A DNA stretch of 39,224 nucleotides, from assembly GCA_020536535.1 (NCBI GenBank), contig JAHLWZ010000167.1, positions 1 to 39,224 on the forward strand, read 5' to 3'. The notes below the pieces were generated by a model. The model had not been told where the DNA came from and did no database searches. It worked only from the letters and a program-made list of their open reading frames with translations. This document shows positions 34,051 through 34,370 of this stretch, piece after piece. Position numbers and translations under genes: made by a program. Origin of the DNA: Pelomyxa schiedti. Lineage: Eukaryota > Protista > Evosea. The number at the start of each line of letters is the position of its first letter. Positions within the stretch are counted from its first letter, which is position 1.

Positions 34051-34219
34051 AAAAAAAAAAAGTCTTCCTTTGTTCCAAAACAACACGACCTTCCCACAAT
34101 TCACTTTTTGCAAGTGGACGGGGTTGGGTGAACATACAAGGAAATTTTCCATTCACGTAGGGAGGCTCCATTGGTCCGCAGTACAGCCCACCCAAAAAAT
34201 TGGAAGGACGTGCGTCTCA

Positions 34220-34305
34220 CAACACTCCTAATGTTGAGGTGCCGGTTCGACCCCGGCCGTGGGGAAAAATCACACAGAACCCCACGTGGTGTAATGGAAG
34301 CATAC
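34220..34305 (+). tRNA. Circularly permuted tRNA-Arg(CCT): 3' half 34220-34265 precedes 5' half 34280-34304/5
   Basis: Rejoined 71-nt cloverleaf CCCCACG TG GTGT AATGGAA GCAT A CAACA CTCCTAA TGTTG AGGT GCCGG TTCGACC CCGGC CGTGGGG A, with a perfect 7-bp acceptor stem and all invariant bases. Confidence 0.85.
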
Positions 34306-34351
34306 TTACGTCACGGTCCTGGGCTGCGCATTCTCAACCCTCCTACCTTGG

Positions 34352-34370
34352 TTTAATTTTTTTTTTTTTT
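34352..34370 (+). terminator. Oligo-T tract, candidate Pol III terminator of the permuted tRNA precursor
   Basis: TTTAA plus a long T run directly after the 3' strand of the precursor stem. T runs are common in this genome, so support is positional only. Confidence 0.45.

Follow-up and report, generated by a model that had tools for sequence, protein, structure and literature searches.

A single-copy permuted tRNA-Arg(CCU) gene of Pelomyxa schiedti with a predicted leader/trailer helix and no recognisable bulge-helix-bulge

A circularly permuted tRNA-Arg(CCU) gene, with the 3' part of the tRNA encoded ahead of the 5' part on a single strand, was recognised by reading positions 33900-34650 of a 39,224-nt stretch of Pelomyxa schiedti DNA (contig JAHLWZ010000167.1, hereafter the window). 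RNA from the locus is cut after A73 and CCA-tailed with the 63-nt leader still attached. The chances appear to us evenly balanced that the locus is productive, that is, that an end-matured two-piece complex is formed, its flanks are removed by a recognition that is not based on a bulge-helix-bulge (BHB), and positions 26 and 27 are joined. The features of the locus are the following.

34157..34219, plus strand: leader, 63 nt, RNA 5' end at 34157 (from sequence, RNA contigs and constrained fold)
34157-65, plus strand: 5' strand of the outer stem, GTAGGGAGG, in the leader
34164-74, plus strand: motif GGCTCCATTGG, in the leader
34172-78, plus strand: TGGTCCG, in the leader (from sequence)
34184-89, plus strand: CAGCCC, in the leader
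34192-34203, plus strand: side hairpin CCAA-AAAA-TTGG, in the leader
34205-15, plus strand: 5' strand of the inner helix, AGGACGTGCGT, in the leader
34216-19, plus strand: unpaired CTCA at the leader end, next to the 3' part
34220..34265, plus strand: tRNA 3' part, positions 27-73 (from sequence, local Rfam match and RNA contig ends)
34220-36, plus strand: anticodon arm CAACA/CTCCTAA/TGTTG, with anticodon CCT in the loop CTCCTAA
34237-40, plus strand: variable region AGGT
34241-57, plus strand: T arm GCCGG/TTCGACC/CCGGC
34258-64, plus strand: 3' strand of the acceptor stem, CGTGGGG
34265, plus strand: discriminator A (A73)
34266..34279, plus strand: linker AAAATCACACAGAA, A-rich, 14 nt, closing the acceptor stem in the primary transcript
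34280..34304, plus strand: tRNA 5' part, positions 1-26 (from sequence and 7/7 complementarity to 34258-64)
34280-86, plus strand: 5' strand of the acceptor stem, CCCCACG, followed by T8 and G9
34289-34303, plus strand: D arm GTGT/AATGGAA/GCAT
34304, plus strand: A26
34305..34356, plus strand: trailer, about 52 nt (from sequence and constrained fold)
34305-07, plus strand: unpaired CTT at the trailer start
34308-20, plus strand: 3' strand of the inner helix, ACG-T-CAC-G-GTCCT, in the trailer
34321-26, plus strand: GGGCTG, in the trailer, followed by unpaired 34327-38
34339-46, plus strand: 3' strand of the outer stem, CCTCCTAC, in the trailer
34357..34370, plus strand: T14 run, a Pol III-type terminator (from sequence)

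Joined as 34280-34304 + 34220-34265, the two parts make up a 71-nt canonical cloverleaf, with 7/7 pairs in the acceptor stem, 4/4 in the D stem (two of them G-U) and 5/5 in both the anticodon and the T stem. The invariants T8-A14, G18G19, A20, A21, T33, A37, T54-A58 and C56 are intact, and the A15-T48 Levitt pair is kept. The junction may be placed at 25/26, 26/27 or 27/28, because the dinucleotide AC is repeated at both borders. Neither ARAGORN nor Rfam at gathering scores reported a match in the window, the outcome to be expected of standard finders when a gene is permuted; at a permissive threshold the Rfam tRNA model matches locally (24.1 bits, 34208-34260), covering the 3' part only. Paralogue searches (BLAST; a leader 22-mer with up to 3 mismatches) retrieved only the locus itself, which is thus single copy. 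A split tRNA with halves at separate loci was considered and rejected, both parts lying 14 nt apart on one strand. Spliced mRNAs seen in the RNA contigs flank the locus, with a 48-nt GT..AG intron upstream (window 33931-33978) and a 54-nt intron downstream, on the minus strand (window 34506-34559), so that the tRNA unit sits in a short intergenic gap.

The RNA data come from two single-cell runs (X1 and X2) of one public study of single-cell protist libraries, dated 2021 and 2023; the libraries were oligo-dT primed, and were analysed as assembled contigs over 33900-34600. In the cDNA contigs of both runs the template-switch oligo (...ACATGGG) is joined directly to 34157; the genomic TTCAC just before this base excludes strand invasion by the oligo at this site. 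The transcript start, set beforehand as a test of the stem, coincides to within a base with 34157, where the outer helix begins. From here the contigs cover leader and 3' part without a gap as far as A73 (34265), and go on with untemplated CCA and poly(A) in both runs, where the genome reads AAAATCAC instead. In the RNA recovered, the 3' part no longer carries the linker, and the closed acceptor is opened. The 5' part and the trailer have no coverage in the contigs, an absence that is weak evidence in oligo-dT libraries, as is, in oligo-dT primed assembled contigs, the lack of RNA joining 34304 to 34220 (26 to 27); nor was a back-joint found, in assembled contigs from oligo-dT libraries that cannot show one. 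The T14 terminator suggests that leader and trailer belong to a single precursor. In eukaryotes poly(A) added after CCA usually marks surveillance substrates, and the captured molecules could be of this kind. The tail following CCA at 34265 has an internal G in one run (CCAAAGAAAA...), which points to a non-canonical poly(A) polymerase as the tailing enzyme.

The flanks had been described as pairing in nested order, and the pairs are all in place: CGT/ACG at 34213-15/34308-10, GTG/CAC at 34210-12/34312-14, AGGAC/GTCCT at 34205-09/34316-20, CAGCCC/GGGCTG at 34184-89/34321-26, and the outer stem GTAGG(G)AGG/CCTCCTAC at 34157-65/34339-46; so are the hairpin CCAA-AAAA-TTGG, the leader TGGTCCG and the terminal T tract (T14, 34357-70). 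The best fold with the cloverleaf enforced (-58.3 kcal/mol) reproduces all these helices, and lies 3.4 kcal/mol above the unconstrained optimum (-61.7 kcal/mol). Yet the folding energy, also chosen in advance as a test, turned out no better than that of shuffled flanks, z-scores being close to zero for the whole RNA (-0.25) as for a leader plus trailer hairpin model (-0.28). Inter-strand pairs number 31 in the hairpin model and 18 +/- 9 in shuffles, of which 75 in 1000 attain the same count. Compared to shuffles, the junction-proximal duplex gives p = 0.014 over 16 nt, and p = 0.13 over 20 nt (126/1000 shuffles; p = 0.11 in a second calculation). The outer stem is better than 96% of upstream genomic 12-mers (p = 0.04), and does not outperform dinucleotide shuffles (p = 0.41), since the 5' end is rich in G and the opposing 3' end rich in C. 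Long-range duplex scoring (70 x 65 nt) was uninformative, shuffles pairing well too. When the two pieces are cofolded, energies of -16.1 with and -13.1 without leader and trailer are obtained, a gain of about 3 kcal/mol; the predicted contribution of the flanks to two-piece stability is small and not decisive. Pairing at this single locus is only weakly above chance; it is the RNA 5' end and the gene family, rather than folding energy, that carry the case for a real helix. Being single copy, the locus does not lend its helices to covariation analysis, and alignment to the most similar cassette (L015/L033/L034) failed, yielding no covariation for them. The argument that the duplex speaks against a random chimera, put forward in the preliminary description, is upheld by the transcript start and by the family-wide pattern, and fails if based on pairing at the locus alone.

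Relatives of the locus were sought in the assembly (52 Mb, 5337 contigs) as a T loop followed, after a short gap, by a D loop. The pattern has 46 matches, versus 20 with a reversed control; in about 25 of the matches an acceptor stem of 6-7 bp spans a linker of 3-14 nt, and a cloverleaf can be rebuilt. The types represented are His, Gln, Asp, Gly, Phe, Lys, Ile, Val, Thr and Arg, along with class II tRNAs. Junctions fall mostly at 25-30, some at about 41-44, and T runs comparable to T14 are located behind most members. The family is made up of sequence-distinct cassettes, leaders and trailers being conserved within a cassette across different anticodons. Junction-proximal pairing of leader and trailer in 10 independent cassettes exceeds that of shuffles (Fisher p between 1e-4 and 1e-3), and that of own partners exceeds that of mismatched ones (p = 0.01 at 20 nt). 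In the 12-bp helix of L013 and L014, 9 of 24 bases differ and 12/12 pairs are kept, by 3 double and 3 single compensatory changes, none being broken; the outer stem of the His/Gln/Asp cassette (cassette 2) shows 2 double changes. Compensatory evolution is found family-wide also in acceptor stems and in junction-spanning anticodon-stem pairs, and in two pairs of recent duplicates all substitutions are outside exons and stems. These results together support the view that the leader/trailer helices of the family are real and under selection. L013 is not a high-copy repeat, hence the family is not SINE-like. Some members look defective, L014 for instance, in which an anticodon loop of canonical form could not be traced.

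Variation within the family takes several forms. L015 and L033 have near-identical bodies and flanks and different anticodons (Phe GAA vs Lys TTT), as have L017 and L037 (Lys TTT vs Ile TAT). In the former pair base 37 shifts with the anticodon (G37 vs A37), and both members carry an unusual C73 discriminator. The motif GG(A/T)GCTC(C/T)(A/C)AT is found in the leaders of the window locus (34164-74), L013, L014, L020, L026, L028, L032 and L006, just after the outer-stem strand, at about +5 to +18 from the mapped RNA start. A (T/A)TCGA(A/T/C) motif resides in the leaders of L015, L033, L034, L017, L037, L036, L039, L011, L013, L026 and L028, which belong to otherwise different cassettes, at varying distance to the 3' exon, and is absent from the window locus. 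That the GG(A/T)GCTC(C/T)(A/C)AT motif acts as surrogate A box or B box, restoring the order of the Pol III promoter, was rejected, as by position-weight matrices built from the tRNAs of this genome the leaders are not enriched for either box (Fisher p = 0.46 and 0.57). Two adjacent units, L022 and L023 (G000:C791, about 296.8-297.2 kb), have an unusual layout, in which leader GGTGCTCTCATAAAC..., class II-type variable arm, T arm, a complete canonical tRNA-Arg(CCT), a D-arm-like segment and a trailer ending in CACTCCC follow one another; this may be a permuted tRNA having a whole normal tRNA as linker.

A strict BHB was coded as a 4-bp central helix with two 3-nt bulges, cut after the second base, and flanking helices, and scored out of 10. 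The preliminary description had noted that none could be built at the locus, and this was borne out, the best score being 5/10 against a mean of 6.2 at shifted control positions; the permuted family averages 5.2/10, which equals its shifted-control mean and is background. As a positive control, the 16-nt intron of tRNA-Ile(UAU), the only intron-containing tRNA among the loci retrieved, scored 9/10 where its splice site was expected, which validates the test and shows that introns of the usual BHB type are in use in this organism. When bulges were allowed 2-4 nt, the central helix 3-5 bp and the cut any position within a bulge, none of the three possible junctions offered a central helix paired throughout, and a scan of every leader against every trailer position gave 2 matches, 2.3 being expected. 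The recurring alternative is a three-way junction, at which the tRNA helix is broken and the leader/trailer helix departs as a side branch. Its linkers are formed by about 3 unpaired A/U-rich bases per strand, CTT and CTCA at the window locus, TAT and TCA in L013, CT and TTC in L003.

Pattern searches gave seven matches for Arg(CCT) and thirteen for His(GTG), permuted loci included. ARAGORN detects at least 5 canonical tRNA-Arg(CCU) genes (one on C818, two on C1662, two on C791), and canonical tRNA-His genes on C1662 and C311; three more pattern matches (C750, C2692) have the same His sequence. The argument that a permuted gene is the sole one for its anticodon was accordingly dropped, canonical Arg(CCU) and His(GUG) genes being present. 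As canonical tRNA-Arg(CCU) genes exist, the permuted locus is not needed for decoding and need not yield a working tRNA; it may be redundant or non-productive. Identity of the permuted gene to the canonical Arg(CCU) copies is only 55-62%, and that every invariant and tertiary-pair base is kept despite this divergence speaks for long-term constraint as a tRNA. In L052/L053 (G000:C1662, 3.9 kb) canonical tRNA genes (Lys, Arg, Asp, His, Gly, Pro, Thr) form a dense array organised as an inverted repeat, reminiscent of the tRNA arrays of Entamoeba.

Among processing enzymes, the genome encodes two catalytic TSEN-type splicing-endonuclease domains and a Sen54-like protein, RtcB (multi-exon, C222) and a TROVE (Ro60-type) protein; the endonuclease genes lie on C292, C526 and C693. 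Two intron-free ORFs of 517 and 582 aa (L074, G000:C953, 718-2271, minus strand; L075, G000:C796, 1078-2826, plus strand) contain an Rnl1/T4-type RNA ligase domain (PF09511) only, and are candidate 3'-OH/5'-P RNA ligases, of the host or of a symbiont. With RtcB and two stand-alone Rnl1-family ligases encoded, machinery for either ligation chemistry is present.

A maturation route can be proposed from these data. The locus would be one Pol III-type transcription unit, extending from 34157 to the T14 run at 34357-70, in whose precursor the leader (63 nt) and the trailer (about 52 nt) would form a long, interrupted, nested helix. The helix would close the tRNA body at the hinge between D stem and anticodon stem (26/27), with 3-4 unpaired bases per strand. 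The linker would be opened first, by RNase Z and RNase P, and two end-matured pieces would stay together through the acceptor stem and the leader/trailer helix, like the halves of archaeal split tRNAs. Those of Nanoarchaeum equitans carry complementary extensions of about 12-14 nt. Leader and trailer would then be cut off at the three-way junction by a recognition other than BHB, and 26 and 27 be ligated by RtcB or an Rnl1-family enzyme. We know of no enzyme resolving such a junction. The helix is probably a relic of origin by tandem duplication, kept because it holds the break points together. A relaxed or different endonuclease site, or a novel maturation route, had been suggested at the outset; the lack of any BHB in the forms tested and the addition of CCA before leader removal are compatible with it, the 26 to 27 join was not observed, and canonical Arg(CCU) genes exist. 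Extended to the Archamoebae, the proposal is that tRNA pieces are joined independently of BHB motifs, being end-matured, CCA-tailed, clamped by a helix, and resolved at a three-way junction with linkers of about 3 nt by an undescribed nuclease-ligase pair or recognition mode; we advance this generalisation tentatively, and would sooner expect it to fail than to hold.

The evidence can be read otherwise. The locus could be a rearranged gene that is transcribed to no effect, its pieces being never joined, but polyadenylated and degraded. The acceptor/T-arm minihelix would suffice for RNase Z and the CCA-adding enzyme, and the complementarity of leader and trailer would be a leftover of duplication combined with G-rich and C-rich composition. 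The sole RNA observed, an unjoined leader plus 3' part with poly(A) after CCA, fits this reading, as do the canonical Arg(CCU) genes, the outer stem no better than composition-preserving shuffles, the overall z near zero, the lack of a recognisable processing signal, and defective-looking family members such as L014. It leaves unaccounted for, on the other hand, that tertiary-pair and anticodon-loop invariants are all intact at 55-62% identity to the canonical copies, that acceptor, junction-spanning anticodon-stem and leader/trailer pairs evolve by compensation family-wide, and that substitutions in recent duplicates avoid exons and stems. A gene without product is, on balance, a real though doubtful possibility.

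The CCA-tailed leader plus 3' part could also be a stable RNA not involved in decoding, alone or annealed to the 5' part plus trailer, with a regulatory or decoy role. The same leader plus 3' part plus CCA species is found in both runs, at a contig depth similar to that of neighbouring mRNAs, although depth is not a measure of abundance, and the genome has a TROVE (Ro60-type) gene; since this reading leaves the conservation of the anticodon loop, and that of the D arm in the other piece, unexplained, and no Rfam family is matched, we regard it as unlikely. Far less probable still is an RNA of about 190 nt staying intact as a tRNA mimic of the YrlA/Y-RNA kind, with a closed acceptor loop on a terminal stem, which had been envisaged on account of the order of T arm, closed acceptor and D arm on a long stem and of the leader TGGTCCG, and to which the TROVE gene might be added. 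Such an RNA is contradicted by the contigs of two runs, in which it is cut at A73 and carries untemplated CCA; moreover the RNA has an anticodon arm, and an Rfam search of 33900-34650 yields no match to Y RNA, YrlA or ribozyme families even at E <= 10. At the same threshold and in the same interval, the flanks have no Rfam match to hammerhead, twister, HDV-like or similar self-cleaving motifs.

Permuted tRNA genes were known so far only from few algae, one nucleomorph and one archaeon, and BHB motifs explain processing in all (PMC3978253). They have been described in Cyanidioschyzon merolae, prasinophyte green algae, the nucleomorph of Bigelowiella natans and Thermofilum pendens (PMC3978253; PMC3218864), with the BHB at a junction located at 20/21, 37/38, 50/51 or 59/60; in algae BHB cleavage and circularisation come first, RNase P and RNase Z act next, and CCA is added last (PMC3978253). 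The window locus resembles these genes in the upstream position of the 3' part, the short intervening sequence, the downstream T stretch and the meeting of leader and trailer at the junction, and an origin by tandem duplication is plausible here too. It differs in the junction (26/27; 29/30 and others in paralogues), the lack of a BHB, the length of the helix (about 30 bp), the addition of CCA before leader removal, the presence of canonical copies for the same isoacceptor, and the host, which is of amoebozoan type. A literature search found no paper linking permuted tRNAs to amoebae. P. schiedti is a non-algal eukaryote with about two dozen permuted tRNA genes, which have new junction sites, lack BHB motifs, carry long clamping helices and show the reverse order of processing. 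If mature tRNAs arise from these loci, tRNA splicing has an undescribed recognition mode, and the loci offer defined substrates for tracking it down; otherwise the family illustrates how rearranged tRNA genes persist, with RNase Z and the CCA-adding enzyme still acting on them.

Similarities extend to other RNAs. In Ro60-bound YrlA and Y RNAs, too, a long terminal stem bears a T arm, a closed acceptor and a D arm; YrlA remains uncut and has no anticodon arm, whereas the locus RNA has one, is opened and CCA-tailed, and matches no covariance model of this class. In the leader/trailer stems of rRNA operons, cut by RNase III in bacteria and containing BHB motifs in archaea, a flanking helix also brings processing sites together; the substrate class is different, and the locus would require precise cuts at tRNA positions 26 and 27, with ligation afterwards. 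Split tRNAs of Nanoarchaeum equitans and Caldivirga (PMC3491384; PMC3218864) are trans-spliced from separate archaeal genes, with a duplex that terminates in a BHB, the target of the splicing endonuclease, while the locus gives one transcript, in a eukaryote, and has no BHB. As in split tRNAs, however, two RNAs would, once the linker is cut, be held by a long leader/trailer duplex next to the break point of the tRNA.
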